From contig NIVC01000353.1 in NCBI GenBank assembly GCA_002269645.1, positions 62,001 through 126,000 of the forward strand: a stretch of 64,000 nt of DNA, read 5' to 3'. The notes below the pieces were generated by a model. It worked only from the letters and a program-made list of their open reading frames with translations, was not told where the DNA came from and searched no databases. This document shows, piece after piece, positions 2 through 46,715 of the stretch; the stretch's first letter is position 1, and the number at the start of each line of letters is the position of its first letter. Origin of the DNA: Macrostomum lignano. Its lineage: Eukaryota. A program made the position numbers and the translations under genes.

Positions 2-6743
<6,742 letters not shown>

Positions 6744-17469: not shown

Positions 17470-20400
17470 TCCTATATACTAAAAATGAAAATCTTGCTTG
17501 CTTGCTTGCTTGCTTGCTTGTAATCGATTAGAGAAAAAATGGCTTAACCGATTTTCATGAGACTTGCACTGTTCGATCAGAAATTTTCCCGTGACGGTAC
17601 ATGTGTCTTGGCTAAGAAATTGCTCGATGCTAAAGGCATTAAATACTCGAAAAACATGCTTTTTTGCAAAGGTCAAGCAAACTTTTCGACTTGAAATGCA
17701 TTGTAAGAATGCTAGAAAAAAATTGACTGGTTGAATTCTGATTCTAAAATAGATTGCATCATAACTGAATTGTAACTCCGACTTGAATTGCGTCACAGTA
17801 TTGAAAATGCAGTGTGGAAGCGAAACACCAGACGTGATTTAGATTGCGTAACCATATTGTTAACTGATACTGACTGACTGAGAAATTGATTATGTCATAA
17901 CTGCCTCGTGTGATTTACTCCATGCTTGGAGTTTTGAAACTTATAATTATAAGTGCTAAAATTCATATTATCAAAACGATGAGAGCTAGCCTAGAGGTAA
18001 ACAGACTGACTGCTAAATGCAGGGACGATGGTTCGAATTTTTAGAGAGTGGAATTTTTTTAATTAAAGCTTTTTAACACCAAAAAGAAAACTAAAAAATC
18101 ATAGAAGCGTCATGTAAAAAATCATAGAAGCGTCATGTAAAAATCATAGAAGCGTCATGTAAAAAATCATAGAAGCGTCATGTAAAAAATCATGGAAGCG
18201 TCATGAAAAAATCATAGGAGCGTCATGAAAAAATCATAGAAGCATCATGTAAAAATCATAGAAGCGTCCTGCAGAAATCGTAGAAGCATCATGTAAATTC
18301 ATAGAAGCGTCATGTAAAAAATTGTGGAAGCGTCATGAAAATATCATAGAAGCGTCATGTAAAAAATCATAGAAGCGTCATGTAAACAATCATAGAAGCG
18401 TCATGTAAACAATCATAGAAGCGTCATGTAAACAATCATAGAAGCGTCATGTAAAAAATCATAGAAGTGTCATGTAAACAATCATAGAAGCGTCATGTAA
18501 AAAATCATAGAAGCGTCATGTAAACAATCATAGAAGCGTCATGCAAAAAATCATAGAAGTGCCATGTAAAAAATCATGGAAGCGTCATGTAAAAATCATA
18601 GAAGCGTCATGAAAAAATCATGGAAGCGTCATGTAAAAAATCATGGAAGCGTCATGAAAAAAAATCATGGAAGCGTCATGTAAAAATCATAGAAGTGTCA
18701 TGTAAAAAATCATGGAAGCGTCATGTAAAAAATCATAGAAGCGTCATGTAAAAAATCATGGAAGCGTCATGAAAAAATCATAGAAGCGTCATGAAAAAAA
18801 CATAGGAGCGTCCTGAAAAAATCATAGAAGCGTCATGTAAAAATCATAGAAGCGTCATGTAAACAATCATAGAAGCGTCCTGCAGATATCGTAGAAGCGT
18901 CATGAAATAATCATTGAAGCGTCATGTAAAAAGCATAGAAGCGTCATGTAAAAAATCATGGAAGCGTCATGTAAAAATTATAGTAGCGTCATGTAAAAAT
19001 CATAGAAGCATCATGAAAAAATCATAGAAGCGTCATGAAAAAAACATAGGAGCGTCATGAAAAAATCATAGAAACGTCATGTAAAAATCATAGAAGCGTC
19101 ATGTAAAAATCATAGAATCGTCATATAAAAAGCATAGAAGCGTCATGTAAACAATCATAGAAGCGTCATATAAAAAGCATAGAAGCATCATATAAACAAT
19201 CACAGAAGCGTCATGAAAAAATCATAGAAGCGTCATGTATAAATCATAGAAGTGTCATGTAAAAAATCATGGAAGCGTCATACAAAAAGCATAGAAGCGT
19301 CATATAAACAATCACAGAAGCGTCATGAAAAAATCATGGAAGCATCATGTAAAAATCATAGAAGTGTCATGTAAAAAATCATGGAAGCGTCATGTAAAAA
19401 GCATAGAAGCGTCATGTAAAAATCATAGAAGTGTCATGTAAAAAATCATGGAAGCGTCATGTAAAAAATCATAGAAGCGTCATGTAAAAAATCATGGAAG
19501 CGTCATGTAAAAATCATAGTAGCTTCATGTAAAAAATCATGGAAGCGTCATGAAAAAATCATAGAAGCGTCATGAAAAAATCATAGGAGCGTCATGAAAA
19601 AATCATAGAAGCATCATGTAAAAATCATAGAAGCATCCTGCAGAATTCGTAGAAGCATCATGTAAACAATCATAGAAGCGTCATGTAAACAATCATCGAA
19701 GCGTCATGAAATAATCATAGAAGCGTCATGTAAAAAGCATAGAAGCGTCATGTAAAAAGCATAGAAGCGTCATGTAAACAATCATAGAAGCGTCATGAAA
19801 AAATCATAGAAGCCTCATTTAAAAACTAATGAAAGCATCATTTAAAAAATTAAGAAGCATCATGGAAGAATAAAAGAAGTGTAATGTAAAAATCAAAAGA
19901 AGCGTCATGTCAGACATGAAGGATGTCATGTAAAAATGAAATGCAGCTATAATGCTGTGCTGGGAAGAAAAACTGAGACGTAAAGGCTCTCAGAGAATAA
20001 CTGAGATTACGAGGGGGGGGGGGTTGTTTCTGGGATCTCAAAGCAAAAGTCAGAAGCTACTTCAAAGTTCATGTACTTTACTCAATTTTTTATTGCATTC
20101 TTTGTTGGCTCGCCATGGGGGGGGTGCTGATAGAAGAAGAGTCATGTAAAAAATAAAAGTAGCACTATGTATACATAAAAGACAAGTCATGTCGAAGTTA
20201 AAAGATTCATTTGGGAATTGCTACGATGTCAAAGCTTGGTGGAAATCGTTATAGTGCTGTGATTCTTAAAGAAGGAATCACTAAAATGTCAAGGCTTAGG
20301 GGAGAAGAATTGCTGAGATTTCAATAAGGCTTTAGGTTGGGTTAAAGTTAGGTTTAGGTCAGGTGTGGGTTGAGGGTTATATTTTATCGGGTTTCAAGGT

Positions 20401-20970
20401 TAACAGTGGATTTTTTAGATTTCAAGGTTTATGGGGGCCATCGCTGACATGTCAAAGCTTACGGACGGGGGGGGGAATAGCTGAGATGTCAAGGCTCACG
20501 GGGGTATAAATGAGATTTCAAGGCTAAAGTCAGAAGCTACATGTAGTTTATTGAAAACTTTTTATTACATTATTTGATGCCTCCTCAGGCGAGGGATCGC
20601 TGATAAAAAAAGCGTTATGTAAAAAATGAAAGAAGCTTATCGCTATAATGCTGTAGTAGTGCTATAATGACTCTTAGAGAGAATTACTGAAATTTCAATG
20701 CTTTAGGGTTAGGTTAGGGTTAGGGTTAGGGTTAGGGTTAGGGTTAGAAGGTTGACAGATATTTTTAGATTTCCAAGGCTTATTGGGGGCATTGCTGAGA
20801 TGTCAAGGGGGGAAGTTGATATGTTAAAGCTGGGGGGGGGGAATTACTGACATGTCAAGGCTTACAAGGTTTGACAGGAGATTTTTTAAGATTTCAAGGA
20901 TACATGTAGCTTATTAAAAAAACGTGTATAGCATTTCTTTGGCTCCCCAACGGGGGGCGTAGATTGCTAG
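17470..20970 (+). mobile_element. Helitron array unit U1, non-autonomous type B (satellite ~18095-19810; TTAGGG tract 20703-20747)
   Basis: A|TCCTATATACTAAAAATG at 17470; ends GCTCCCCAACGGGGGGCGTAGATTGCTAG at 20970. Confidence 0.93.
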
Positions 20971-22395
20971 TCCTATATACTAAAAATGAAATGTCTGTAA
21001 CTAACTAGCTATGCGATAGATTTCAGAAAAATTGGCTCAACCGATTTTCTTCAAACTTGCACCATTCGATCAGAAATTTTCCATGGACGGTACATGCATC
21101 TTGGCTAAGAAATTGCTCAATGTTAAAGGGATTAAATATTCGAAAAACATGCTTTTTTGCAAAGGTCAAGCAGCTCTTTCGACCTGGAATGCATTGTATG
21201 AGTTGTAAGAATGCTAGAGAAAAAACCTACTGGCTGAATTCCGATTGTGATAAAGATTGCATCACAACTGAATTGTAACTCCGACTTGAATTGCGTCACA
21301 GTGTTGAAAACACTCTGTGGAAACATAGCACGAGACTTGATTTAGACTGCGTAACCATATTGTTAACTTTAATTAGAACTGATACTGACCGATTGAAAAA
21401 TTGATTATGTCATAACTCTCATAACTGCTTCGTGTTCATCTCTGCTTCGTGCTCATCTCGATCGCGTTAAACATACGAGTAAAAGAAGCGTTATGTAAAA
21501 CGCTTAGTGGGGGAATTGCTGAGATGTCGATGCTTACTCCAGAACCAAGAACCAAATGTTTCATTTCAAGCATAAGTAGCTCATGTAAAGCATAGAATAT
21601 AAACGAATATTCCATAACACATGCCTTTCTGCAAGGGTCAACAGAACTTTCTACTGCGAGCCATTCTGACTGGAATTAAACTAGGCAGCGTCAGTAAATT
21701 AGTATTTTTTGTCGCCACTCTAGAGAATTATAAATGTACACTGCGAGAAGAGATGTGTATTATAAAATGTTCACGTGCACAATTAACAAACTAACTTTAA
21801 AAGCTGGAAATAGGGAGAGTGAGAGAGTGAAACACATACGAGCGTACGAGTATATTTAATCGATTCACATCGCAAGCTAAAGCTAAAGAAACCTGAGTTG
21901 CCTTTTCATATGCGATATTCAAGACCCCCAATCTATAGGCTAAAGTACGTTTTAGTAAGACCGTCGTATCATAAAAAGTGCATACCATCCATCGATAAAT
22001 AGAATTATTATTAAATGCCACAGAGATGTACATTGGCTACTGAGATTTGCGCCTCCTTCAGAAAATTTATCTCAATCCTTTAACATGGGAGAGTTAGCCT
22101 TAGGCTTAAAAATTCATTACAGTACTGGGCCAAGGTGTTTTAGAGAGAATATTAAATAATAAAAAGTCCTGACCAATTAGCAGGCGGGTGTTGGAGACAG
22201 AATTTAGGCTTGCTGTACACACTGACAGTCTGACGACAGTGTACAAATGGTGTCCAGCTTTTTGGGGTTGTGTGGTTGATGAGTTTAAAACGCGTGACAT
22301 GATAGATTTCATACCATACTCTTTTCTCGCACACAACCCCCATACTATTTTTTCATTATCACTCAAAATTCTTATTTTTCAATTCGAATTCCAAT

Positions 22396-25300
22396 ATGGC
22401 TCGACGTGGCACCAGCGCATTGAAGAAGAGCAGAGATGCCAAGAAGAAGCGTCAGCAAGAGAGTGCCGTTCAGCGAGAAGAGCGCCTGATGAGACTCCGA
22501 CAGCAGGAGGCTGAGCGAAGAGCAAGTGAAACCGATGCTCAGCGAGAAGAGCGCCTGACGAGACTCCGACAGCAGGAGGCTGAGCAAAGAGCAAGTGAAA
22601 CCGATGCTCAGCGAGAAGAGCGCCTGACGAGACTCCGACAGCAGGAGGCTGAGCAAAGAGCAAGTGAAACCGATGCTCAGCGAGAAGAGCGCCTGACGAG
22701 ACTCCGACAGGAGAATGCTGAGCAAAGAGCAACTGAAACAGACGCTCAGCGTGAAGAGCGTAGATCTGCAGACAGAATTCGTGCAGAGAAGCGACGCGCT
22801 TCAGAAACCGAAGATGAACGAAGAGCTCGAATCGAAGCCGAACAAATTCGCCGTCGAGGAGTGTCGGTTAGCAGGTAGGATGACGTTTTAATCTGAGCTA
22901 TTATATATTTCTGTGATCATTCTTAACACACTGTGACCGTTAAATGATAATAATCAATGTGCCCGTTGTGTTCATGTTTATTCTTTTATGGGTATTTTGT
23001 ATTGTAGTTGTTGTTTAATTGGTACATAGGCTTATACTGAAAAACTAGAGCCCATTTCTAAGTCTTTTAACGCAATTTTTCTCATATTTTTGAGATAGGC
23101 TTCCAGGAATTATACATATGAGATAAGTATTTTAGATAGAATCTACAATTAAAATATATTCGGTTTCTAATAATATTAAGTTTCGAAGCCTGTTTCTAAG
23201 AATATTATATGTGTGAGTCGGCTTCGAAGAATCTTAAATCTATGAGATAGGTATTTAATATAACAATATTAATTTATGAGAATCGGTTAAGCATTTTTTA
23301 CTGATGAAAATGGTTTTCGAAGAATCTTTGTTTATAATGCAATTACATTTTAGACTGGTTTGTAAGAATGTAGAATGGCATAAAAATATTCTTCACTATT
23401 CTAAGAACCGCCAAATGAAGTTGTGTATAATCCAAATATACTAAATCTTTATTTCCTCTATTCCAGGTTTGATAGTAGTGAGTTGGCCACACCGTCTGTG
23501 GTACCTTTTGATGCGTTGCGCATAATTCGAATTCCTGGTGATGGGAACTGTTTTTTTCATGCAGTCTGTGACCAGTTGCAGGGCACTCCACTTGAGACCG
23601 ATGCAGCATCTTTAAGACACGAGCTGACGAGCCGTGTAGTGCAGATTATGCCAGAATTGATTGAACAAGGCTTTGTTTTGCCAGAAAATGCTGATTTCAT
23701 TGTTGATTCATCTTTTTCTGAAGGCACATATGTGCCTGATGAAGTTGTTCCGCTTTTAAGCCGTTGTTTTAATGTTGATCTGGTAATTTATCAAGAAAAT
23801 GGCAGTGTATTGCAGTACTGTATGTCCCCTTTGCAGCCACCGATTGCAATCGTCCGAATTCTTTTGCGTCATGAGCATTATGAGTCATTGCGATTTGCTA
23901 ATCCGATTTCAGTTTCTGAGCCCATTGCAGATGCAGAGGAGCCAAGATTAACTCAGCAGAGTGCAGGTCATTTTGGCGCAAGACCTGCTCAAGAGAGGTA
24001 GGTCATTGGTGTGACTGGTCATCATAATTTATTTGTCATCGAAATCAAGTTTTAAGTTTTATTCTAATATTTTTTTGTAAAATGAAAGATTAACCGGGAA
24101 AACTATTTGCCATTAATCCTTCCTAATCCTAATCCTTCCAATCACAGGCCAGAACGGATTATCAGGCCTGAAGCGCCAGCCCATAACTGTGGCCCAATGG
24201 ACAGAGCATGCGACCAATGCGGTGCATTACTTTGGTGCTCTGAGACGAGGAATTTCTGCTGCGCCAAAGGCAAGGTAAAGCTACCCAGCCGCACCGTGCC
24301 TCAAGTGCTGGCGGATCTGTACATGGGGCAGCACAGAATGAGTGCTGAGTTCCTGACCAACATTAGAAGTTACAACTCGGCGCTGCACCTGACATCGCTG
24401 GGTGCCAAACTGCGGTTGGTGCCAGGCTGGTGTCCCAGCTTCATCATCAGCGGCCAGTTGCATCACAACACGGCGTCGCTGTTTGCAGAAGATTCAGCTG
24501 AGCCCCATGGCTGGCAAGTGTATTTCAATGATCGCGAACTTGAAAGCCGCCAGAGTCTCAGCCAGAAGGTGAAGCCGGAGCTACTGGAGCTGCTGCAGAC
24601 GCTGCTTCACGAGTGTAACGGCTATGTCCGCAGCCTGAGGGCAGTCGCTCATCGAATCAGTCAAGATCCGGAGTTGGGAGATGCGCGAATCGTGATTCAC
24701 CCTGACCGTCGACCATCTGGGGAACACATTCGGTATGTCTGCAAGACACTTTAATAACATATTTTGCGTAATAAAGTATCTAATTATCCAATTTGTACAG
24801 ACTCTGTATCCCACAAAATCCGTTTGAAATCAGGCGCTACAACTTGCCTACGGCGAACGAGGTCGGTATCCTGATCGTTGAGGACAATGAGAACACACCG
24901 GCCAGTCGGGACGTCGTGATTCAGCTGCGTGGAGGCGGTTCCCAGCGAATCAGTGAGACGCACCGCTCATACGACCCGCTGGAGTATGTGCTGCTGTTCC
25001 CGAATGGCGAAGATGGCTGGCACCCGGAGTTGCTGATGAGTAATGGCAAGAAATTAACGCCCATGAAATACTATGCGAGCGAAATCATGGTGCGAGCGGG
25101 CCAGTTCAGTGTGCTGCACTATGGCCGAAGATTATTTCAGCAGTACTTGGTGGACATGTGTGCCAAGATTGAGGCAGAGAGGCTGCTGTATTTGCGGACC
25201 CATCAGCAGGACCTGCGCAGCGAGACGTATAGCGGTCTGCGGGACGCTTTGTTTGCGGCTGATGGCAGGTCTACCGACAGAGATCCGAGTGACATAGGCA

Positions 25301-28300
25301 AGCCCGCGCATGTGCTTCTGTCTTCGAGCTTCGTTGGCGGGCCAAGGTACCTGATGGAGAGGCTACAAGACGCTATGACCTATGTTCACAAGTTCGGTAA
25401 GCCGGACCTGTTTGTCACCGCAACGTGCAATCCGAAATGGCCGGAGATCAGCGCCCAGCTGCTGCCTGGACAGCGGGCAGAAGACCGGCCCGACATTGTT
25501 AGCCGAGTCTTTGAAATGAAGAAGAAAGCTCTGCTGGCCCAGTTGACCAAGCGCTATGGGAAAGAGGCCGCTCACGTTTGCTCACTGGAGTACCAGAAGC
25601 GTGGTGAGTAAAAATTCTGACTTGCAAGAATCAAAGTTTTAAGATTTATTGAAATTTAGATTTACAAAGGTTTGTGATTTTTTCTACTTTTTTGACGCTC
25701 CAGGTCTTCCTCATGTGCACTTTCTGCTGTGGCTCGTGAGCGGTCAGCGAGTGACTCCGGACCGATACGATGACATCGTGTCTGCCGAGATTCCGGACCC
25801 AGAGCAGCAGCCCGTGCTGTATGAGCTGGTGAAGACGCACATGATCCATGGCCCCTGCGGCAAGGACAATCCAGCGTGCCCTTGCATGGAGAATGGCGAA
25901 TGCAGCAAGGGCTTTCCTAAAGAATTCCAGCAGGTGACGCTGACCAGCGATACAGGCTACCCACTGTACCGCAGACTGTCGCCTGAGATGGGCGGATTTA
26001 CAGTGGACAAGCTGTTTAAAGGCCGGAGCATTCGCATGGACAACAGGGGAGTTCAAACGCTAATATATTGCTCAGTTGTGCTTTGCTGCTTTTGTTTCTG
26101 AAAGTTAATGATATTATTTTTTCATTAAAACAGGTGGGTCGTTCCGTACAGCCCTGACCTGTTGCTCCAGTTTGTATGCCACTTGAACGTCGAAGTTTGC
26201 GCCACTGTGAAGTCGGTCAAGTACGTGATCAAGTACCTGCTAAAGGGTGGCGACATGGCGACGTTCAAAGTCGATGCCAATAGGAATCCAACTGAACCGA
26301 GAGAGCAGGCAGTGGGTGACCAGCAGCCGACGCAAAGGACAGGAAATGAGCCACGTGATGAGATCAAAGAGTACCTGTCCGCGCGCTACATTGGTCCAAT
26401 GGAAGCCGTGAATACCATCTTGGGCTTTGAAGTAATTCGCATTTTAATTATTATTGGCTCATTTTAACCAGAGCTGTGAACACCTCGTCATAGTATAAAT
26501 TGAATTTCCATTGAAACTTAAAGGCTGTATATTTCCTTCCACTTTCTGATCAGGTGCACAACAGATTTCCGGCGGTCATCCGACTCTGCGTTCACAAGTC
26601 GGAAGAGCAGCTCGTGTATTTCAACGAGGGGACCGCAAGAGCAAAAGCGAGAACGCCGAAGGATTCGACGTTGACGGCATTTTTCAAGCTGTGCCGTATT
26701 GACGAATTTGCTGGGTCCTTGCTCTACACGGAGGTGCCGTCCTACTTTGTGTGGCACTCCAGCGAAAGAGAGTGGCGGCGGGCCAAGCAGGGTGTGCGAG
26801 TCGATGGCCATCCGGGTGTAGTGCGGAACAAAAACGTTGCACGCATGTACACGGTGAGTCCAAGAGCAGGTGATTTATTTTATGTTCGAATGCTCCTTTT
26901 GAATGCTAGGGGACCGACTAGCTTCGAGGCGCTGCAGACCGTGGACGGCGTTGTGCATCCGAGCGCCAAGGCTGCTTGCATGGCACTTGGCCTGCTGCAG
27001 CGAGATGACCACTGGCGGCGGTGTCTAGCTGAGGCCGTTCAGTCAAGAATGCCAAGAGCCCTGAGACATCTTCTGGCCGTAATTCTCATATGGGGTGAGC
27101 CTGAGGATGGCAGCGACCTCTGGTGCAGTTTTGCCGAGGATCTCAGCGAGGACCTGCGGTTTCACCACCGAGACTTGAGCACCGAGGAGATTACTGACCT
27201 GGCGCTGCGTGAGCTTCAGAGCATGCTGATCTCCATGGGCGGGAGAAGCCTGCCAGAGTACGGCCTGCCTGCGGCCTCCGTGACACCTCAAGATGGACCA
27301 ATGCAGTTTGATACGGTTGAGCAAGCACTGATTACTGAGGCGCGCTTACCAATGCTGACAGATGAGCAGAAAGCGGTGTACGAGTCCGTGACTCAGAATC
27401 TTGTGGACGGCGCCAGCGGCTTGCACTTCCTGGACGCACCTGCTGGCACTGGCAAGACCTTCCTGCTGGAGGTTCTGCTAGCCTTCGTGCGCAGCCGGGG
27501 TGAAGTCGCCCTCGCCGTTGCGGCTTCTGGAATCGCAGCGACTCTTTTGCCAGGTGGACAGACGGCGCATTCAACGTGAGTAATTTATTGTCAATATTTC
27601 AAAAAGCAGTTGTAAATATTTCGTGTGCTGTAAATATGTTCGGCATGGTGAAACTATTTGTCTATGCCAGGTTCAAGATACCAATTCGGGCGATCCGTTC
27701 GAGCAAAGACGTGTGCGCTGTTGGAGCGCAGTCCAAACAGGCCGCTTTATTTCGGACAGTGCGTCTAATTGTCTGGGACGAGATTTCTATGACAAACCGG
27801 AAGGATTTGGAGGCCGTCGACCGGTGCTTGCGAGACGTGCGGAAGCAGGACGTGCCATTCGGCGGAGTGGTTTTCGTTTGCGCTGGGGACTTTCGCCAGC
27901 TGCTGCCCGTTGTGGTGCATGGGACTCGAGCCAACAGCGTCATGGCGTGTGTCAGCAGATCCCCACTGTGGAAATTTTTCCGGCGGCATCGCCTTACAAG
28001 AAACATCCGATTGCTGAGCAGTTCCGATTCTGCAACGTATTTGAGATACACCGAGCTACTCAAGCAGGTAAGTTTGTTTTCATCAGTTTATTTATTGGAA
28101 GATTTAAGGATGTTCGGTTTCTTTCGTGTTGAGAGCTCCATTTTAAAAATTGTGGCTTATTCAAGAATGCCTTGCTTAAAGTCTGTCTAGCGTTTTAAAT
28201 ATTTTACTTTTAACTCCCCCAGATCGGATCCGGAACAATTGAGCAGGATGCAGAGGAGAAAGTGTCTCTTCCTGCTGAGATCATTATTTCTGCGGAGGCG

Positions 28301-28987
28301 CCGCTCAATGATCTGATAAATTTTGTGTACCCATCGTTTGAGGCCTCAGTGGAGAGGGACGGCTACTTTGCAAGCCGAGCGATCCTGGCGCCGTACAATG
28401 ACTCAGTGGATGCCATCAACGAGACGTGCCTGGGCATGTTCCCCGGCAGCCTGCGGGAGTACCGCTCAATAGACAGTGTGGCCGATGAGGATGCCGCTAC
28501 GCACTTCCCGCCTGAGTTGCTCAACCAGCTGGATGCCCCGAACTTTCCGATTCACTTGCTGAGGCTAAAAGTGGGTATGCCAGTAGTTCTTCTCAGGAAC
28601 ATCAACCCGCCACGATTGTGCAATGGTACGCGGCTGATCATACTCGCAATGGGCGAGAACGTGCTTAGATGCAAGATTGCCGCCGGCCAGTTCACGGGAG
28701 ACGAGATTCTTCTGCCGCGAATCCCGCTGATTCCTAGCAATGCGGACCTCCCCGTCAGTTTTAAGCGGCTGCAGTTCCCTGTGAAGCCGAGTTTCTGCCT
28801 GACGATTCACAAGTCGCAGGGACAGTCTCTGGACACAGTTGGCATTGACCTGTCAGTCGGTTGCTTCACGCATGGCCAGCTGTACACGGCGCTGTCACGA
28901 GCAAAGAACGCGGCAAATGTTCGCGTCCGGATTCCGGGAACAAGGACCAGAAACGTTGTGTTTCCAGAAGTTCTCACTGAAGACTAA
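22396..28987 (+). CDS. Helitron RepHel transposase: 23-aa charged repeats + OTU protease + Zn-binding motif + HUH/Y2 Rep + PIF1 helicase, ~1729 aa. Exons 22396-22874, 23467-23997, 24148-24732, 24834-25603, 25704-26046, 26134-26431, 26554-27575, 27671-28067, 28223-28987
   Basis: OTU motifs IPGDGNCFFHAV...HEHYESL; CDQC..CC; Rep motifs PDLFVTATCNP, EYQKR|GLPHVHFLL and KYVIKYLLKG; helicase motifs DAPAGTGKT, IVWDEISM, GDFRQLLP, TIHKSQGQSL and HGQLYTALSR. The spliced length of 5190 nt is a multiple of 3, and conserved motifs are rejoined across introns. One donor (26047) reads GG instead of GT. Confidence 0.93.
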
Positions 28988-30129
28988 TTTATTTATCGTA
29001 AAAAATGAGGGGTGAGCAATAATTTTCCTTATTATTGCAAAAGGCTAGAAAGTATATTCATTTATTTTTAAGGAAAAATAGAATAATTATTTCCCATCTC
29101 TCTTAAGTAATAGCTCTCATTCTCTAAAGCAATAGCTGTCAATAGCTCTCATTCCTAAAAGAATCGCAGGAAACTTATTGCCCCAACCTCATTTCTAACG
29201 AAGCGTAGATATTGCATGGCAGTGAGTACGAGCTAATAGCTAATGAACTTTATGTTGAAGCTCAATTAGGCTTATTTTATTCATTGTATAAATTTTTACA
29301 GTCAATTTGCACTTTACAGTTAATTTGTATTTTAAGGCAATTTCATATAGCCGAAAGTAACTTTTGAAACAAACCTTCTTTTGCACTGCTTTTAATGAAT
29401 TCAATCTTTGATGAGCAGTTAATTTTGTCTTTTATTTTTCCCCTGAAATTTCATCATAATTTGTGTAAAAACTTTACTTATTTTATATCGCAAATTTATG
29501 CAAAAGACGAAACAACTTTGTTTTTAGTTTTCCAAGGTTCGCAAAAACTTAACATTAGAGTGAATTTTAGTATATGGATTTTTACGCAAACTACGAGTGA
29601 CAGTCTTTTTTTCAAAAATCAAAAATATCTCAAGTCACCTGTAACAACTGTGGACTGTAAGCTCATAAAAAACGATTTGCATCAACTTGCGATGGGGCCT
29701 TCGTCTTCCATATATTGAAAGTTGAATAATATACGAAACTCACAAGATGTCAATTTTAACTAAGGCGAAGGCCCTGAATGAAGCTTTTGTCTTACTTCAT
29801 TTCTTAATCTTTGGCGAAACAAATATGAATAGTCTGTGGCAAAGCGCAAAGGCTAAGGAAATAGAGCCGAACTGATTGTTCTGACTATAGATTTGAGGGC
29901 AGGAATGAGCGAATCAGAGGGCTGCGACTATAGACTAACGTAGAGTATTAAAGGAACTCATCTGGTCACATGCAGCCATTGCACACGCTATGTATACGTG
30001 ACATATCGGTTGTACTTTTAATGCCATGTTCATAAGTTTCACTTTGTACTTTTCAAGTTTATTCGCAAAAAAATACAAAAAATTCTTGCGTTACAAACGT
30101 CAAAAACGTTTAACAAACGTTAAAAATTA

Positions 30130-30880: not shown

Positions 30881-31111
30881 CATGCTTGCTATCTGGGGGA
30901 TGCTTGCTATCTGGGGGATGCTTGCTATTTGGGGGATGCTTGCTATCTGGGGGATGCTTGCTGTCTTGGGATGATTTCTTTTTGCATTACACTTTATTTG
31001 AGCAGTTTGTCTGTTGTCTTTGTCAAGGCTTTATTTGGCTGTCTTTTTGTTACTTGTAGAGAACAGAGATTCTATACAGATGCCCCCCAACGGGGGGGCG
31101 AAGATTGCTAG

Positions 31112-33466: not shown

Positions 33467-33487
33467 TCCTATATACTAAAAATGTGA

Positions 33488-33525
<38 letters not shown>

Positions 33526-36500: not shown

Positions 36501-36751
36501 GTTAGGGTTAGGCTAGGGTTAGGGTTAGAAGGTTGACAGATATTTTTAGATTTCCAAGGCTTATTGGGGGCATTGCTGAGATGTCAAGGGGGGAAGTTGA
36601 TATGTTAAAGCTTGTGGGGGGGGATAACTGACATGTCAAGGCTTACAAGGTTTGACAGGAGATTTTTTAAGATTTTAAGGATACATGTAGCTTATTAAAA
36701 AAACGTGTATTGCATTTCTTTGGCTCCCCAACGGGGGGCGTAGATTGCTAG
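33467..36751 (+). mobile_element. Helitron array unit U4, non-autonomous type B (satellite ~34100-35200; TTAGGG tract 36484-36528)
   Basis: TC...hairpin-CTAG termini; the 5' part closely matches the solo element at 519-3293. Confidence 0.93.
36090..36426. mobile_element. hAT-type MITE nested in U4
   Basis: 15-bp TIRs CAGGGGCGTAGCCAG / CTGGTTACGCCCCTG and an 8-bp TSD TAATGCTG (36082-36089, 36427-36434). The empty site is visible in U1, U6 and the solo element. Internal GGGGCGCCAGTTTCTTTTA repeats. Confidence 0.9.
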
Positions 36752-39700
36752 TCCTATATACTAAAAATGAAAATCTTGCTTGTTTGTACGCAATCGATTA
36801 GAGAAAAAATGGCTGGACCGATTTTCTTCGAACTTGCACTGTCCGATCAGAAATTTTCCCGTGACGGTACATGCATCTTGGCTAAGAAATTGCTCCATGT
36901 TAAAGCGATTAAATATTCGAAAAGCATGCTTTTTTGCAAAGGTCAAGCAAACTTTTCGACTTGAAATGCATTGTAATAATGCTAGAGAAAAAACTGACTG
37001 GTTGAATACTGATTCTGAAATAGATTGCATCATAACTGAATTGTAACTCCAACTTGAATTGAAAATGCAGTGTGGAAGCGTAGCACCAGACTTGATTTAA
37101 ATTGCGTAACCATATTGTTAACTGATACTGACTGACTGAGAAACTGATTATGTCATAACTGCCTCGTGTGATTTACTCTATGCTTGGATTTTAAAGTGTT
37201 GAATTATATAAGTGCAAAATTTGATGTTATCAAAACGATGAGAGCTAGCCTAGAGGTGAACAAACTGAACTGCCAAATGCAGCGACGATGGTTCGAATTT
37301 TCATAGAGTATAATTTTTTTAATTAAAGCTTTTCAACTTCAGGAAAACTAAAAGACTTTTTAAAAAGAAGCGTCATGTAAAAAATCATAGAAGTGTCATG
37401 TAAACAATCATAGAAGCGCCATGTAAAAAATCGTAAAAGCGTTATATAAAAAATCATAGAAGCGTAATGTAAAAAATCATAGAATCGCCATGTAAAAATC
37501 GTAAAAGCGTTATATAAAAATCATGGAAGTGTAATGTAAAAAATCATAGAAGCGTCATGTAAAAAATCATAGAAGCGTCATGAAAAAATCATAGAAGCGT
37601 CATGTAAACAATCATAGAAGCGTCCTGCAAACAATCATAGAAGCGTCATGTAAAAATCATAGAAGCGTCATGAAAAAATCATAGAAGCGTCATGTAAACA
37701 ATCATAGAAGCGTCATGCAAACAATCATAGAAGCGTCATGTAAAAGTCAAAAAAGCGTCATAAAAAATCATAGAAGCGTCATGAAAAAATCATGGAAGCG
37801 TCATGAAAAAATAATAAAAGCGTCATGTAATAATCATAGAAGCGTCATGCAAAAATCATAGAAGCGTCATGAAAAAATCATAGAAGCGTCATGTAAAAAT
37901 CATAGAACCGTCATGTAAACAATCATAGTAGCGTCATTAAAAATCATAGAAGCGTCATGCAAACAATCATAGTAGCGTCATGTAAAAATCATAGAAGCGT
38001 CATGCAGACAATCATAGTAGCGTCATTTAAAAAATCATAGAAGCGGCATGTAAACAATCATAGAAGCGTCATGTAAAAGTCAAAATAGCGTCATAAAAAA
38101 TCATAGAAGCGTCATAAAAAATCATCGAAGTGACATGAAAAAATCATAGAAGCGTAATGTAAAAAATCATAGAGGCGTCATGAAAAAATCATAGAAGTGA
38201 CATGAAAAAACCATTAATGCGTCATGTAAACAAGCATAGAAGCGTCATGTAAAAATCAAAGAAGCGTCATGTAAACAATCATAGAAGCGTCATGTAAACA
38301 ATCATAGAAGCGTCATGAAAAAATCATAGAAGCGTCATGTAAAAAAAGCATAAAAGCGTCTTGTAAAAAATCATAGAAGCGTCATGTAAACAATCATAGA
38401 AGCGTCATAAAAAAACCATAGAAGCGTCATGTAAACAAGCATAGAAGCGTCATGTAAAAATCATAGAAGCGTCATGTAAACAATCATAGAAGCGTCATGT
38501 AAACAATCATAGAAGCGTCATGTAAACAATCATAGAAGCGTCATGTAAAAATCATAGAAGCGTCATGTAAAAAAATCATAGAAGCGTCATGTAAAAATCA
38601 TAGAAGCGTCATGTAAAAAAATCATAGAAGCGTCATGTAAACAAGCATAGAAGCGTCATGTAAAAATCAAAGAAGCGTCATGTAAACAATCATAGAAGCG
38701 TCATGTAAACAATCATAGAAGCGTCATAAAAAAACCATAGAAGCGTCATGTAAACAATCATAGAAGCGTCATAAAAAAACCATTGAAGCGTCATGTAAAC
38801 AAGCATAGAAGCGTCATGTAAACAATCATAGAAGCGTCATGTAAACAATCATAGAAGTGTCATGTAAAAAATCATCGAAGCGTCATGTAAACAAGCATAG
38901 AAGCGTCATGTAAACAATCATAGAAGCGTCATGTAAACAATCATAGAAGAGTCATGTAAACAATCATAGAAGCGTCATGTAAACAATCATAGAAGCGTCA
39001 TGTAAACAATCATAGAAGCGTCATAAAAAAACCATAGAAGCGTCATGTAAACAAGCATAGAAGCGTCATGTAAAAATCATAGAAGCGTCATGTAAACAAT
39101 CATAGAAGCGTCATGTAAACAATCATAGAAGCGTCATGTAAACAATCATAGAAGCGTCATGTAAACAATCATAGAAGCGTCATGTAAAAAAATCATAGAA
39201 GCGTCATGTAAACAAGCATAGAAGCGTCATGTAAAAATCAAAGAAGCGTCATGTAAACAATCATAGAAGCGTCATGTAAACAATCATAGAAGCGTCATAA
39301 AAAACCATAGAAGCGTCATGTAAACAATCATAGAAGCGTCATGTAAAAAATCATAGAAGCGTCATGTAAACAATCATAGAAGCGTCATGTAAACAATCAT
39401 AGAAGCGTCATGTAAACAATCATAGAAGAGTCATGTAAACAATCATAGAAGCGTCATGTAAACAATCATAGAAGCGTCATGTAAACAAGCATAGAAGCGT
39501 CATGTAAACAAGCATAGAAGCGTCATGTAAAAAATCATAAAAGCGTCATGTAAAAAATCATAAAAGCGTCATTTAAAAAATCATAGTTGCGTCATGTAAA
39601 AATCATAGAAGCGTCATGCAAACAATACTAGAAGCGTCATGGTAAAATCATAGAAGCGTCATGCAAACAATCATAGAAGCCTCATATAAAAACTAATGAA

Positions 39701-41213
39701 AGTGTCATTTAAAAAATTAAGAAGAATAATGGAAGAATAAAAGAAGCGTCATGTAAAAATCAAAAGAAGCGCCATGTCAGACATGAAAGGTGTCATATAA
39801 AAATTAAATGAAGCTATAGTACAGTGCTGTGCTGGGGAGAATTACTGAGACGTCAAGGCTCACAGAGAATAACTGAGATTACAGGTGGGGGGGGGGGTTT
39901 CTGAGATGTCAAAGCAAAAGTCAGAAGCTACTTCAAAGTTCATGTACTTTACTCAATTTTTATTACATTCATTGTTGGCTCGCCACAGGGGGGGGGCGCT
40001 GATATAGAAGCAGAGTCATGTAAAAAATAAAAGTAGCACTATGTATACATATAAGAAAAGTCATGTCGAAGTTAAAAGATTCATTTGGGAATTGCTACAA
40101 TGTCAAAGCTTGGTGGAAATCGTTATAGTGCTGTGATTCTTAAAGAAAGAATCACTAAAATGTCAAGGCTTAGGGGAGAAGAATTGCTGAGATTTCAAGG
40201 CTTTAGGTTCGGTTAAAGTTAGGTTTAGGTCAGGTGTGGGTTGAGGGTTATATTTTATCGGGTTTCAAGGTTAACAGGGGATTTTTTAGATTTCAAGGTT
40301 TATGGGGGCCATTGCTGACATGTCAAGGCTTACGGGGGGAATAGCTGAGATGTCAAGGCTCACGGGGGTATAAATGAGATATCAAGGCTAAAGTCAGAAG
40401 CTACATGTAGTTTATTGAAAACTTTTTATTACATTATTTGATGCCTCCTCAGGGGAGGGATCGCTGATAAAAAAGCGTAATGTAAAAAATAAAAGAAGCT
40501 TCATGTCGAAGTTAAGAGATTCATTTGGGAATCCCTACGATGTTGAGGCTTGCAAGGAATCGCTATAATGCTGCAGGGCGTAGCCAGGAATTTTGTTTGG
40601 GGGGGGCCTTGAGTTAGGGGGCGCCAGCTTCTTATAGGGGGGGGGCGCCAGTTTCTTGTAGGGGGGGCGCCAGTTTCTTTTAGGGGGGCGCCAGTTTCTT
40701 TTAGGGGGCGCCAGTTTATTTTAGGGCGGGCGCCAGTTTCTTATAGGGGGCGCCAGTTTCTTTTAGGAGGGGGGGCGCCAGTTTCTTTAAGGGGGCGCCA
40801 GTTTCTTTTAGGGGGGGCGCCAATGCCAGAGTTGGTGATTATGGGGGGGGGCCACGGCCCCCCTTGCCCCCCCTCTGGTTACGCCCCTGTAATGCTGTAG
40901 TAGTGCTATAATGACTCTTAGAGAGAATTACTGAAATTTCAATGCTTTAGGGTTAGGGTTAGGGTTAGGGTTAGGCTAGGGTTAGGGTTAGAAGGTTGAC
41001 AGATATTTTTAGATTTCCAAGGCTTATTGGGGGCATTGCTGAGATGTCAAGGGGGGAAGTTGATATGTTAAAGCTTGTGGGGGGGATAACTGACATGTCA
41101 AGGCTTACAAGGTTTGACAGGAGATTTTTTAAGATTTTAAGGATACATGTAGCTTATTAAAAAAACGTGTATTGCATTTCTTTGGCTCCCCAACGGGGGA
41201 CGTAGATTGCTAG
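36752..41213 (+). mobile_element. Helitron array unit U5, non-autonomous type B (satellite ~37370-39680; TTAGGG tract 40947-40991)
   Basis: TC...hairpin-CTAG termini; 5' half near-identical to U6, 3' half near-identical to U4. Confidence 0.93.
40574..40889. mobile_element. hAT-type MITE nested in U5 (same insertion site as in U4)
   Basis: Same TIRs and the same TAATGCTG TSD at the homologous position. Confidence 0.9.
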
Positions 41214-44200
41214 TCCTATATACTAAAAATGAAAATCTTGCTTGTTTGTACGCAATCGATTAGAGAAAAAATGGCTGGACCGATTTTCTTCGAACTTGCA
41301 CTGTCCGATCAGAAATTTTCCCGTGACGGTACATGCATCTTGGCTAAGAAATTGCTCCATGTTAAAGCGATTAAATATTCGAAAAGCATGCTTTTTTGCA
41401 AAGGTCAAGCAAACTTTTCGACTTGAAATGCATTGTAATAATGCTAGAGAAAAAACTGACTGGTTGAATTCTGATTCTGAAATAGATTGCATCATAACTG
41501 AATTGTAACTCCAACTTGAATTGAAAATGCAGTGTGGAAGCGTAGCACCAGACTTGATTTAAATTGCGTAACCATATTGTTAACTGATACTGACTGACTG
41601 AGAAACTGATTATGTCATAACTGCCTCGTGTGATTTACTCTATGCTTGGATTTTAAAGTGTTGAATTATATAAGTGCAAAATTTGATGTTATCAAAACGA
41701 TGAGAGCTAGCCTAGAGGTGAACAGACTGAACTGCTAAATGCAGCGACGATGGTTCGAATTTTCATAGAGTATAATTTTTTTAATTAAAGCTTTTCAACT
41801 TCAGGAAAACTAAAAGACTTTTTAAAAAGAAGCGTCATGTAAAAAATCATAGAAGTGTCATGTAAACAATCATAGAAGCGCCATGTAAAAAATCGTAAAA
41901 GCGTTATATAAAAATCATAGAAGCGTAATGTAAAAAATCATAGAATCGCCATGTAAAAATCGTAAAAGCGTTATATAAAAATCATGGAAGTGTAATGTAA
42001 AAAATCATAGAAGCGTCATGTAAAAAATCATAGAAGCGTCATGAAAAAATCATAGAAGCGTCATGTAAACAATCATAGAAGCGTCCTGCAAACAATCATA
42101 GAAGCGTCATGTAAAAATCATAGAAGCGTCATGAAAAAATCATAGAAGCGTCATGTAAACAATCATAGAAGCGTCATGCAAACAATCATAAAAGCGTCAT
42201 GTAAAAGTCAAAAAAGCGTCATAAAAAATCATAGAAGCGTCATGAAAAAATCATGGAAGCGTCATGAAAAAATAATAAAAGCGTCATGTAATAATCATAG
42301 AAGCGTCATGCAAAAATCATAGAAGCGTCATGAAAAAATCATAGAAGCGTCATGTAAAAATCATAGAACCGTCATGTAAACAATCATAGTAGCGTCATTA
42401 AAAATCATAGAAGCGTCATGCAAACAATCATAGTAGCGTCATGTAAAAATCATAGAAGCGTCATGCAGACAATCATAGTAGCGTCATTTAAAAAATCATA
42501 GAAGCGGCATGTAAACAATCATAGAAGCGTCATGTAAAAGTCAAAATAGCGTCATAAAAAATCATAGAAGCGTCATAAAAAATCATCGAAGTGACATGAA
42601 AAAATCATAGAAGCGTAATGTAAAAAATCATAGAAGCGTCATGAAAAAATCATAGAAGTGACATGAAAAAACCATTAATGCGTCATGTAAAAAATCATGG
42701 AAGCGTCATGCAAAAATCATAGAAGCGTCATGAAAAAATCATAGAAGCGTCATGTAAAAATCATAGAAGCGTCATGTAAAAATCATAGAAGCGTCATGTA
42801 AAAAATCATAGAAGCGTCATGTAAACAATCATAGAAGCGTCATGTAAACAATCATAGAAGCGTCATGAAAAAATCATAGAAGCGTCATGTAAAAAAAGCA
42901 TAAAAGCGTCATGTAAAAAATCATAGAAGCGTCATGTAAACAATCATAGAAGCGTCATAAAAAACCATAGAAGCGTCATGTAAACAAGCATAGAAGCGTC
43001 ATGTAAAAATCATAGAAGCGTCATGCAAAATTCATAGAAGCGTCATGTAAAAATCATAGAAGCGTCATGTAAAAAAATCATAGAAGCGTCATGTAAACAA
43101 GCATAGAAGCGTCATGTAAAAATCAAAGAAGCGTCATGTAAACAATCATAGAAGCGTCATGTAAACAATCATAGAAGCGTCATGAAAAAATCATAGAAGC
43201 GTCATGTAAAAAAAGCATAAAAGCGTCATGTAAAAAATCATAGAAGCGTCATGTAAACAATCATAGAAGCGTCATAAAAAAACCATAGAAGCGTCATGTA
43301 AACAAGCGTAGAAGCGTCATGTAAAAATCATAGAAGCGTCATGTAAACAATCATAGAAGCGTCATAAAAAAACCATAGAAGCGTCATGTAAACAAGCATA
43401 GAAGCGTCATGTAAAAATCATAGAAGCGTCATGTAAACAATCATAGAAGCGTCATGTAAACAATCATAGAAGCGTCATGTAAACAATCATAGAAGCGTCA
43501 TGTAAAAATCATAGAAGCGTCATGTAAAAAAATCATAGAAGCGTCATGTAAAAATCATAGAAGCGTCATGTAAAAAAATCATAGAAGCGTCATGTAAACA
43601 AGCATAGAAGCGTCATGTAAAAATCAAAGAAGCGTCATGTAAACAATCATAGAAGCGTCATGTAAACAATCATAGAAGCGTCATAAAAAAACCATAGAAG
43701 CGTCATGTAAACAATCATAGAAGCGTCATAAAAAAACCATAGAAGCGTCATGTAAACAAGCATAGAAGCGTCATGTAAACAATCATAGAAGCGTCATGTA
43801 AAAATCATAGAAGCGTCATGTAAAAAATCATAGAAGCGTCATGTAAACAATCATAGAAGCGTCATGTAAACAATCATAGAAGCGTCATAAAAAACCATAG
43901 AAGCGTCATGTAAACAAGCATAGAAGCGTCATGTAAAAATCATAGAAGCGTCATGTAAACAATCATAGAAGCGTCATGTAAACAATCATAGAAGCGTCAT
44001 GTAAACAATCATAGAAGCGTCATGTAAACAATCATAGAAGCGTCATGTAAAAAAATCATAGAAGCGTCATGTAAACAAGCATAGAAGCGTCATGTAAAAA
44101 TCAAAGAAGCGTCATGTAAACAATCATAGAAGCGTCATGTAAACAATCATAGAAGCGTCATAAAAAAACCATAGAAGCGTCATGTAAACAATCATAGAAG

Positions 44201-46605
44201 CGTCATAAAAAAACCATAGAAGCGTCATGTAAACAAGCATAGAAGCGTCATGTAAACAATCATAGAAGCGTCATGTAAACAATCATAGAAGCGTCATGTA
44301 AAAAATCATAGAAGCGTCATGTAAACAATCATAGAAGCGTCATGTAAACAATCATAGAAGCGTCATGTAAAAAATCATAGAAGCGTCATGTAAACAATCA
44401 TAGAAGCGTCATGTAAACAATCATAGAAGCGTCATGTAAACAATCATAGAAGAGTCATGTAAACAATCATAGAATCGTCATGTAAACAATCATAGAAGCG
44501 TCATGTAAACAAGCATAGAAGCGTCATGTAAACAAGCATAGAAGCGTCATGTAAAAAATCATAAAAGCGTCATGTAAAAAATCATAAAAGCGTCATTTAA
44601 AAAATCATAGTTGCGTCATGTAAAAATCATAGAAGCGTCATGCAAACAATACTAGAAGCGTCATGGTAAAATCATAGAAGCGTCATGTAAACAATCATAG
44701 AAGCGTCATGTAAACAATCATAGAAGAGTCATGTAAACAATCATAGAAGCGTCATGTAAACAATCATAGAAGCGTCATGTAAACAAGCATAGAAGCGTCA
44801 TGTAAACAAGCATAGAAGCGTCATGTAAAAAATCATAAAAGCGTCATGTAAAAAATCATAAAAGCGTCATTTAAAAAATCATAGTTGCGTCATGTAAAAA
44901 TCATAGAAGCGTCATGCAAACAATACTAGAAGCGTCATGGTAAAATCATAGAAGCGTCATGCAAACAATCATAGAAGCCTCATATAAAAACTAATGAAAG
45001 TGTCATTTAAAAAATTAAGAAGAATAATGGAAGAATAAAAGAAGCGTCATGTAAAAATCAAAAGAAGCGCCATGTCAGACATGAAAGGTGTCATATAAAA
45101 ATTAAATGAAGCTATAGTACAGTGCTGTGCTGGGGAGAATTACTGAGACGTCAAGGCTCACAGAGAATAACTGAGATTACAGGTGGGGGGGGGTTTCTGA
45201 GATGTCAAAGCAAAAGTCAGAAGCTACTTCAAAGTTCATGTACTTTACTCAATTTTTATTACATTCATTGTTGGCTCGCCACAGGGGGGGGGGCGCTGAT
45301 ATAGAAGCAGAGTCATGTAAAAAATAAAAGTAGCACTATGTATACATATAAGAAAAGTCATGTCGAAGTTAAAAGATTCATTTGGGAATTGCTACAATGT
45401 CAAAGCTTGGTGGAAATCGTTATAGTGCTGTGATTCTTAAAGAAAGAATCACTAAAATGTCAAGGCTTAGGGGAGAAGAATTGCTGAGATTTCAAGGCTT
45501 TAGGTTCGGTTAAAGTTAGGTTTAGGTCAGGTGTGGGTTGAGGGTTATATTTTATCGGGTTTCAAGGTTAACAGGGGATTTTTTAGATTTCAAGATTTAT
45601 GGGGGGCATTGCTGACATGTCAAGGCTTACGGGGGGAATAGCTGAGATGTCAAGGCTCACGGGGGTATAAATGAGATATCAAGGCTAAAGTCAGAAGCTA
45701 CATGTAGTTTAATGAAAACTTTTTATTACATTTTTTGTTGGCTCCTCAGGGCTCACTGATAGAAAAAGCATAATGTAAAAAATAAAAGAAGCTTCATGTC
45801 GAAGCGAAGAGATTCATTTGGGAATCCCTACGAGGGAATCGCTATAACGCTGTAGTAGTGCTATAATGACTCAGAATTACTGAAATTTCAATGCTTTAGG
45901 GTTAGGTTAGGGTTAGGGTTAGGGTTAGGGTTAGGCTAGGGTTAGGGTTAGGGTTAGGCTAGGGTTAGGGTTAGAAGGTTGACAGATTTTTTTAGACTTC
46001 AAGGCTTATTTGGGGCATCGCTGAGATGTCAAGGGGGGAGTTGATTTGTTAAAGCTTGTGGGGGGAATTACTGACATTTCAAGGCTTACAAGGGACTTCT
46101 GAGGTATATTGCAAAGAGATGCTACATGTAGTTTATTACAAAACTTGTACTGTATTTTTGGCTCCCTAACGCTAAGATACTAAGCTAAAAAATACTACTA
46201 GCTCTTCACAAACTTATGCAGATGTCAGGCTGTAGGGTTAGTGTTAGGGTTGGTATTAGGGTTTAGGTTTAGGGTTAGGTTCAGGGTTATTGCGTTAAGA
46301 TTCGGGTTAGGGTTAGGGTTAGGGTAGCTTATAACTTGGCTCATTTAGCTTATTAAAAATGTTTATCATGGAAGCATCATGCAAAAATAATGGAAGCGTC
46401 ATGCAAAAACAATGGAAGCGTCATGCCAAAAATCATAGAAGCATCGATCATGCAAAAACTCATGGACAAAATATTGAATTTAGGGTTTTGGTTAGGGTTA
46501 GAATTTTGACAGGAGATTTTTTAAGATTTCAAGGCTACATGTAGCTTATTAAAAATACGTGTATTGCATTTCTTTGGCTCCCCAACGGGGGGCGTAGATT
46601 GCTAG
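41214..46605 (+). mobile_element. Helitron array unit U6, non-autonomous type B (satellite ~41830-44990; TTAGGG tracts 45896-45974 and ~46235-46325)
   Basis: TC start after CTAG; ends ...GGCGTAGATTGCTAG|T at 46605, closing the A|T target opened at 17469. Confidence 0.93.
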
Positions 46606-46715
46606 TCTTACCTGTAGTACTTACTGCTTCTGTTTCAGCTTCTGCGTGCCTTTAAAGCGATTTTGCTAGTTAATTTTTTGTTTTAGAAAGCTCAAACAAA
46701 TCTCTGATCATTTAC

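Follow-up and report, generated by a model that had tools for sequence, protein, structure and literature searches.

A mixed-subfamily Helitron train in Macrostomum lignano, possibly built by homing to resident left ends

Introduction

How do dissimilar transposons come to occupy a single insertion site, each joined to the next without a spare nucleotide? The question is raised by a 64,000-nt stretch of the Macrostomum lignano genome (assembly GCA_002269645.1, contig NIVC01000353.1, positions 62,001 to 126,000 of the forward strand; hereafter, the window), in which six Helitron units, U1 to U6, form a head-to-tail train. The origin of Helitron arrays has so far been answered by analogy with rolling-circle concatemers, not by test. 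The family considered here offers a direct handle: its mixed junctions without spacer number in the hundreds, its target word can be measured and is similar to the left end of the element, and paralogs supply empty sites. A first description made from the letters of the window (the sequence-only reading) had proposed that the train grew leftward through repeated insertion at the left boundary of the resident element. Based on searches of the whole assembly (764 Mb, 5,269 contigs), it is argued here with fair confidence that the stack was built by homing of separately arrived Helitrons to a resident left end, with U5 added by later unequal exchange, and that it represents at least five separate arrivals from a single RepHel family, three of B type and two of A type, including the RepHel-coding unit.

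Results

Six units in one A|T site

Coordinates are positions in the window, and junction and end strings were searched as exact matches. The 27-nt junction GATTGCTAG|TCCTATATACTAAAAATG has five exact occurrences in the window, where none would be expected by chance, and in all five CTAG adjoins TC with zero spacer between head-to-tail units. A sixth left end begins at 17470 with an A immediately before it, and the final CTAG stops at 46605 with a T next, giving a train of 29,136 bp:

17469, + strand: host A, 5′ half of the single A|T target (empty paralogs read GACAAGAA|TCTTACCTG)
17470–20970, + strand: U1, non-autonomous B-type Helitron, 3501 bp
20971–31111, + strand: U2, A-type RepHel-coding Helitron, 10141 bp
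31112–33466, + strand: U3, non-autonomous A-type Helitron, 2355 bp
33467–36751, + strand: U4, non-autonomous B-type Helitron, 3285 bp
36752–41213, + strand: U5, B-type putative chimera, 4462 bp
41214–46605, + strand: U6, B-type Helitron with rearranged 3′ module, 5392 bp
46606, + strand: host T, 3′ half of the target, with flank TCTTACCTGTAG
20962–20988, + strand: junction U1|U2, B right end to A left end, exact 27-mer
31103–31129, + strand: junction U2|U3, A|A, exact 27-mer
33458–33484, + strand: junction U3|U4, A|B, exact 27-mer
36743–36769, + strand: junction U4|U5, B|B, duplicate of the U5|U6 junction, exact 27-mer
41205–41231, + strand: junction U5|U6, B|B, duplicate of the U4|U5 junction, exact 27-mer

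Subfamily order along U1–U6 is B-A-A-B-B-B, with a 23-mer satellite, AGAAGCGTCATGTAAAAAATCAT, in the B units and a 23-mer, AAACATTAAAGAGCCACCATGTC, plus an 18-mer in the A units. All seven copies in the window (the train and a solo element, U0) open with TCCTATATAC and close with GATTGCTAG. As read from the letters, a predicted GC hairpin, CCCC-AAC-GGGGGG, stands about 12 nt before CTAG in every unit, followed by CG(T/A)AGATTGCTAG. These observations bear out the structural part of the sequence-only reading: the six sizes and five exact zero-spacer junctions stand, the single A|T site bounded by A17469 and T46606 is matched by two empty paralogs, the one RepHel-coding unit is confirmed in U2 by Pfam, catalytic motifs and a Helraiser match, and comparison of the units agrees with two subfamilies in the stated order with differing satellites.

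The uninterrupted site was found in two paralogous contigs, C1177 (58906|58907) and C997 (356342|356341), in both of which the 800-bp flanks on either side of the train directly adjoin each other, at 2–4% divergence from the train flanks (96–98% identity). This contiguity indicates that the whole 29,136 bp is one precise A|T insertion, without target duplication or deletion, and the insertion is younger than the 2–4% paralog divergence. A second train, of three units and 9.8 kb on C34, is entirely absent from C3339, where the empty site reads CTATAAATA|TATCTCTCTAAAACTG and the 300-bp flank is 100% identical to C34. This was the one additional empty site obtained when ten other train heads were compared with their homeologs by one concatenated flank query (one flank proved to be a repeat), a comparison that gave zero partial trains.

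A further GATTGCTAG at 46998–47006 was considered as the end of a seventh unit and rejected; since it lacks the hairpin and lies inside a WSC-domain coding region, it is taken as a chance 9-mer.

Between the invariant 18-nt left end and a conserved block, which reads GATTAGAGAAAAAATGGCT in B and GATTTCAGAAAAAATGGCT in A, come 15–50 nt of hypervariable sequence with lineage-specific microsatellites such as (CTTG)n, (TA)n, (CTAT)n, (GGTA)n and (GTAT)n. This stretch is a natural lineage barcode; it occupies window positions 17488–17525, 20989–21030, 31130–31160, 33485–33525 and 36770–36795, and is likewise present in the sampled loci L001–L060 (at about locus position 1519–1570).

Helitron class and the coding unit

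One unit of the train carries a predicted coding region:

22306–28987, + strand: U2 coding region, about nine predicted exons, from Pfam matches and motifs

The predicted exons would encode STPR repeats, an OTU-like stretch, Helitron_like_N (Rep) and a PIF1 helicase. Pfam matched Helitron_like_N at 3.5e-46, and PIF1 and Pif1_2B were also matched; the catalytic motifs comprise HUH (HVHFLL, from nt 25712), two tyrosines (YVIKY, nt 26222) and Walker A (GTGKT, nt 27445), and the Rep exon matches Helraiser 7LCC at E = 4e-45. With TC...CTRR ends, a hairpin, A|T insertion and a Rep-PIF1 coding member, the train units classify by sequence as canonical Helitrons (HLE1).

The first U2 exon (22306–22878), with STPR DNA-binding repeats (Pfam 2.7e-13), is built of a 69-bp tandem repeat, and the OTU-protease match of the next exon (23405–24001) is weak, lying under the Pfam curated cutoff. 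A RepHel 85% identical in amino acids in the Rep exon was found in Logan runs SRR31628392–SRR31628436 (loci L083–L087). Its exon layout is that of U2, with an additional downstream RPA-like OB-fold gene that U2 lacks, and no element termini were found in these Logan contigs.

Units that differed on arrival and a chimeric U5

The 5′ modules of U1, U2, U3, U4 and U6 mutually differ by 5–18% (82–95% identity). Because these differences exceed the 2–4% divergence of the flanks, divergence in place is impossible, and the units were already different on arrival. Near-identity of monomers, as expected of a rolling-circle concatemer, is absent; only the U4/U5/U6 segment resembles a local copy.

In that segment, the first 600 bp of U5 equal U6 at 99.5% (3 differences in 600) and the last 1200 bp equal U4 at 99.9% (1 difference in 1175), in contrast to 94.4% between U4 and U5 at the 5′ end and 94.8% between U5 and U6 at the 3′ end. 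Breakpoints were mapped by windowed global alignments, in which the left ~1.4 kb of U5 is U6-like and the right ~1.9 kb U4-like, each at 99–100%, with the switch located within the 23-bp satellite:

37366–39777, + strand: 23-bp satellite of U5, holding the putative crossover zone
18092–19910 (U1), 34102–35299 (U4), 41828–45075 (U6): B-type satellite arrays homologous to that of U5
30122–30884 (U2), 31689–33061 (U3): A-type satellite arrays

Such a pattern is expected from unequal exchange between the satellites of a U4–U6 pair, and a false assembly loop would match it too. By this comparison, U5 reads as a chimera, U6 on its left and U4 on its right, for which unequal exchange in the 23-bp satellite or misassembly would account, and not as an independent insertion. 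A second local duplicate, the pair L009/L010, was seen in a train on contig C13.

Junctions across the genome

The exact 18-nt left end occurs 1,911 times in the genome: 863 times after A, 703 after G, and 345 after C or T. Only ~27 of the G-preceded left ends lack A at −2, while ~96% follow ...AG, mostly as part of recognisable right ends. The exact 27-mer junction accounts for 452 copies on hundreds of contigs, and in total ~35% of the left ends adjoin a right end. Seen from the other side, 2,159 A- or B-type right ends are followed by an exact left end in ~18% of cases and by an exact or variant one in ~34%. Random A|T use would give a junction fraction of ~10^-5; by a rough estimate that assumes ~10^8 A|T sites, the preference for a junction is ~10^4-fold per site over an average A|T. 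Selection alone, with insertions elsewhere purged, was rejected as the cause of zero-spacer junctions, since it cannot lift a chance of ~10^-5 to ~0.35.

To describe partner choice, 35 of roughly 700 junctions were typed on both sides, yielding 10 AA, 7 AB, 6 BA and 7 BB pairs and few of other types, with no departure from random pairing (Fisher p = 0.7). Among 595 junction pairs compared, one inter-locus pair was near-identical on both sides, which is about chance level. The combination of random partners and rare recurring dimers suggests that junctions are made afresh, neither copied as dimers nor derived from one circle. Counting junctions against solo ends and tabulating the joined subfamilies had been suggested by the sequence-only reading; the count lies far above random A|T use, and the random mixture means that arrays are not mostly homogeneous.

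Some A-preceded left ends lead into other internal sequence and were typed as "?"; these include loci L031, L035, L039, L043, L049, L056 and L058. In addition, tandem segmental duplications containing a Helitron were seen in two places: a solo element recurs along with its host flanks at C19:1185394 and 1194912 (L046 and L047, 9.5-kb spacing), and another does so at C23:439875 and 443671 (L050 and L051, 3.8-kb spacing).

A left-end-like target motif on one side of the joining point

Host flanks were gathered with degenerate patterns (up to 35 places) printing the 20 nt after the right end, which gave 109 different flanks. In 75 of these 3′ flanks (69%), CTA starts at +7 to +9, compared with a background of 3.7% among the A|T sites of the window that lie outside Helitrons; the enrichment has p = 6e-53 in the first sample (n = 72), and the second sample contributed 26 of 37. 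The host 3′ motif is T-N5-7-CTAWANNT, that is, when aligned on CTA, CTA followed by A or T, A, two free positions and T (72%). The element left end reads T-CCTATATA-CTAAAAAT-G, or T-N8-CTAAAAAT, and thus holds the same word as the host motif. On the 5′ side, the host flank has no pattern other than A at −1 and A or T at −2 and −3, the base next to the element being A in ~69%, C or T in ~28% and G in ~3%. A host T follows 108 of the 109 right ends; on the 5′ side, A in only ~69% makes target use looser than the textbook A|T rule.

Judged from these flanks, target recognition appears to be one-sided, located 3′ of the joining point and resembling the left end. A one-sided, left-end-like motif combined with a preference for A on the 5′ side would make a host A plus a resident left end a very good target, and a G on the 5′ side would make left ends inside a train, as well as the CTAG|host-T boundary, poor ones. 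The 3′ host flank of the present train, TCTTACCTGTAG, has CTG at +7, a weak form of the family motif.

Three left ends (L032, L041 and L054) lie at a single internal point of the B 5′ module, GCGTAACCATA|TTGTTAACTGATACT, ~384 bp in (corresponding to ~33850 in U4). They belong to two different inserts, and the site reads T-N6-CTGATACT, a near-match to the target motif.

Near-miss products at left boundaries

Some left ends are directly preceded by a left-end fragment of 9, 11, 12, 15 or 16 nt, or by TCC alone, and certain right ends run straight into TATATACTAAAAATG, a left end lacking its first three bases. Near-miss forms include the pair A|TCC|TCC... and CTAG|TATATACTAAAAATG, one from each side; the CTAG|TATATACTAAAAATG products have differing downstream barcodes, which marks them as independent events. 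A cut after C3 puts CTA at +7 from the new T, the modal host geometry. A further right end meets the interior of an A-type 5′ region, ~22 nt in. These reciprocal products show integration into chromosomal residents near their left boundary. Imprecise junctions with shortened right ends also exist, namely ...GATTGCT|TCC (recurrent) and ...GAAGA|TCCT|TCC.

Runs of (TCCT)n or (TTCC)n stand before many left ends, some of them next to host DNA and others next to CTAG (including C6:1068673, C24:174184, C31:304281, C194:148786, C221:161490 and C312:312766), and the (TCCT)n runs look as if they were a stutter of the first four bases of the element.

Relative age of the units

Dating used a genome search with the 500-bp 5′ cores of U1, U4 and U6, the three B units left once the duplicate U5 is set aside; U2 and U3 lay outside this dating, and a sample of 30 + 30 loci was too sparse to date units. 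The U1 core has three identical copies elsewhere and two more with 1–2 differences, the closest relatives of the U4 core (six copies) have ~3 differences per 500 bp, and the closest non-local relative of the U6 core, with U5 excluded, has ~9 differences per 500 bp. Equal ages of U1, U4 and U6 were rejected (p = 0.005). Among the dated units, these distances make U1 the apparent youngest and U6 the oldest and the likely founder. The order U1 < U4 < U6 is that expected of leftward growth, and it argues against both one-step arrival and rightward growth.

Three copies 100% identical to the U1 5′ core lie on the minus strand of C2090, at 30862–31361, 42742–43241 and 56396–56895, with spacings of 11.9 and 13.7 kb, which suggests a higher-order repeat of a whole train or a very recent burst.

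Other features of the window

The train is intergenic, ~100 bp past the stop codon of the right-hand WSC gene. Its neighbours, the solo element and the telomere-type repeats are as follows:

16196–16612, + strand: left neighbour, small WSC-domain gene
46708–47109, − strand: right neighbour, small WSC-domain gene, convergent with the left one
519–3293, − strand: U0, solo B-type Helitron, 2775 bp, A|T flanks; its 3′ flank TATCAAACTAGAAAA has the target motif
20714–20743 (U1), 36484–36507 (U4), 40947–40970 (U5), 45907–45930 and 46307–46324 (U6), 744–805 (U0, minus): TTAGGG runs

The runs, (TTAGGG)4-5 in forward orientation, stand ~260 bp before the 3′ end of every B-type unit, with extra runs in U6, and amount to a telomere-type repeat carried around by a non-autonomous Helitron. 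The WSC genes belong to a cluster of small, secreted-looking members (15593–15817, 16196–16612, 46708–47109 and 47968–48423) present on three paralogous contigs, C353, C997 and C1177, that are 2–4% apart; C997 lacks ~120 bp found at window positions 47000–47121. A lookup of the flanking WSC protein in other assemblies gave no record, and an Rfam scan of the window gave no match. Outside the Helitrons, the window contains perfectly uniform tandem arrays (100% matches), namely (AGTT)123 at 4539–5030, a 14-mer repeated 13 times at 11852–12033 and a 17-mer repeated 33 times at 62849–63410, as well as a GC-rich 20-bp satellite of 1.5 kb (9073–10614) and a 9-bp array of 0.9 kb (12610–13538).

Discussion

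Proposed homing to the resident left end and its competitors

In the reading favoured here, the founder U6 would have entered an ordinary intergenic A|T, leaving host A | TCCTATATACTAAAAATG. The family transposase would pick targets by a CTAAAAAT-like word a few bases 3′ of the joined T, with a preference for A on the 5′ side, and a resident left end behind a host A would then be an exceptionally good target. Each later element would insert exactly there, setting its own CTAG against the resident TC and renewing the A|left-end pad one unit further left. Internal left ends, now preceded by G, would rarely be used, so that growth would take place mainly at the head; U5 would be a later product of unequal exchange involving the U4 and U6 satellites. 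Homing is thus favoured but unproven, since we infer both the reading of the motif by the transposase and the arrival of units one at a time. For the family as a whole, it seems an even call whether a single CTAAAAAT-like word is read by RepHel both in the family's left end and in its targets, with A-preceded left ends acting as self-renewing pads that capture about one third of insertions by any subfamily.

Several observations weigh against this account. The spacing of the shared word does not match, CTA standing at +10 in the left end versus +7 to +9 in hosts (+10 in 1 of 72), and the resemblance of motif and left end has, by rough estimate, a chance probability of ~0.02. RepHel also cleaves naturally at the right boundary, CTAG|T. 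"?" types make up 10 of 32 A-preceded ends (31%) and 2 of 35 ends downstream of junctions (6%; p = 0.01), a scarcity implying that the 18-nt word by itself makes no pad; if homing holds, the pad perhaps needs the ~450-bp 5′ module, which is ~80% identical between A and B, although "?" types may instead be of different age. The age order draws on three B units of one train, and the apparent youth of U1 could reflect daughter copies made from U1; moreover, nearest-neighbour identity was alike for G- and A-preceded 5′ modules (p = 0.88 in a 55-module sample of low power). No intermediate allele was seen, the two paralogs of this locus and C3339 all being fully empty, and such all-or-none occupancy would also fit the one-step arrival of a preformed multimer. 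Finally, the 29-kb repeat train is known from the assembly alone.

The mechanistic claims of the sequence-only reading are accordingly retained in part. Independent insertion at the resident A|TC is backed by the junction excess, random pairing, the target motif, G exclusion and the age order; U5 drops out as an independent insertion, and an intermediate allele was not found among the sites compared. For the proposed pad, common to autonomous and non-autonomous partners and renewed at each step, random subfamily pairing agrees with the sharing; stepwise growth is unseen. Leftward growth with U1 youngest agrees with the relative distances U1 < U4 < U6, within the limits of three dated units.

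The best-surviving alternative, which we consider improbable, is that RepHel joined the 3′-OH of one right end to the tyrosine-linked 5′ end of another element and that the resulting mixed multimer entered in a single event. The chemistry would be that of circle closure, but in trans and before integration. All-or-none occupancy at both comparable loci is what it predicts, the junctions equal the known circle junction CTAG|TC (PMC5876387), and random partner choice fits it equally well. It is opposed by the unequal distances of the dated B units (0, ~3 and ~9 differences per 500 bp; p = 0.005) and by the near-misses lying between host DNA and a left-end fragment, since such products need a chromosomal resident; it also gives no reason for the likeness of motif and left end, or for G being avoided at hosts yet universal at junctions.

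Rightward growth, in which new elements would enter the resident CTAG|T through the retained host motif or RepHel cleavage and the rightmost unit would be youngest, is unlikely. The host motif does survive just 3′ of CTAG|T after a first insertion, the right end is a natural cleavage site, and imprecise junctions with shortened right ends exist. Nevertheless, G is the 5′ base in only ~3% of host insertions, six units accumulated here despite a weak flank motif (CTG, not CTA, at +7), and the age order is the opposite one, with U6 oldest and U1 youngest.

Less likely still is an assembly artefact, in which the order and number of units, especially U5, would come from long reads misjoined in shared satellites and 5′ modules. 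The units do have 600-bp modules and kilobase-long satellites in common, and U5 is the exact product of a false loop through a satellite, with differences that lie within consensus error. Misjoining is difficult to reconcile with 452 identical junctions on hundreds of contigs, with train units that are mutually distinct and with flanks unique to this paralog, and it would yield neither a target motif nor an age order.

Least likely of all is local amplification only, that is, one or two insertions followed by rolling-circle concatemers or unequal crossing-over and later divergence: U5 exemplifies it (99.5–99.9% likeness between the U4|U5 and U5|U6 junction regions), L009/L010 on C13 is a second case and arrays have been ascribed to concatemers (PMC5876387, PMC11934779, PMC12628747), so that it may have contributed, but as sole mechanism it is rejected, as it cannot put A beside B when subfamily pairing is random genome-wide, nor produce unit differences of 5–18% in an insertion younger than the 2–4% paralog divergence.

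Implications

If homing to resident ends is correct, it would explain the clustering of Helitrons, and the pads would offer the elements a refuge in which host genes are spared. Units with satellites would accumulate in long arrays that then grow by unequal exchange, offering a route from transposon to satellite DNA, and mixed Helitron arrays in general, including those of bat and maize, may stem from end-homing rather than from concatemers. Likewise, Helitron target choice would be sequence-directed in a manner analogous to that of IS608 and IS91, but read from the transposon side. Sequence-directed integration by a eukaryotic HUH transposase would also be relevant to targeted DNA insertion tools.

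Comparison with known systems

Bacterial IS608 and IS91 recognize as their target the word that flanks their own cleaved end. By analogy, the present family would share with them a single protein–DNA reading for end cleavage and target choice, the absence of target duplication, and the possibility that a resident end recreates the target. The bacterial enzymes read a 4-nt word 5′ of the joining point, whereas the present family has its word 3′ of that point, within the left end of the element itself; a further difference is that the predicted enzyme is a two-tyrosine Rep fused to a PIF1 helicase, in an animal host. Site-specific integration by such HUH single-strand transposons (IS608/IS200-IS605 and IS91) is described in PMC5876387.

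Tandem Helitron arrays of bat (Helibat), silkworm, maize and Arabidopsis have been attributed to terminator bypass or rolling-circle concatemers (PMC5876387, PMC4067079, PMC11934779, PMC12628747). The M. lignano train resembles them in its head-to-tail units, precise CTAG|TC joints without spacer, canonical TC...hairpin-CTAG structure at A|T, and local duplication (U5). It differs in that its monomers are mostly dissimilar, subfamilies pair at random, the three dated B units are of unequal age and about one third of family members stand in junctions, none of which is predicted by a one-circle concatemer.

The premise that mixed adjacency is unheard of is too strong. As summarized in PMC4067079, which cites Thomas et al. 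and a maize survey, distantly related Helitrons are directly adjacent in bat and maize, a similar placement of different families side by side that suggests that Helitrons attract Helitrons. Mixed adjacent Helitrons are therefore already known from those hosts, and the present train extends the pattern. The bat and maize cases, as cited there, come with no mechanism; here, a zero-spacer rule, a left-end-like motif, G exclusion and an age order are added. The literature examined contained no left-end-like target word, G exclusion, zero-spacer random pairing or within-train age order, and overlap with the maize analyses is possible.

A further parallel is provided by Drosophila transposon dimers that form by double insertion through site preference (McGurk and Barbash, as reported within PMC12628747). 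There, too, repeated insertion at one site builds tandem copies able to seed longer arrays. In that account, the Drosophila dimers involve cut-and-paste or retro-elements and mostly the same element, whereas in M. lignano the Helitron's own end would be the landing pad, renewed at each step and open to members of either subfamily.

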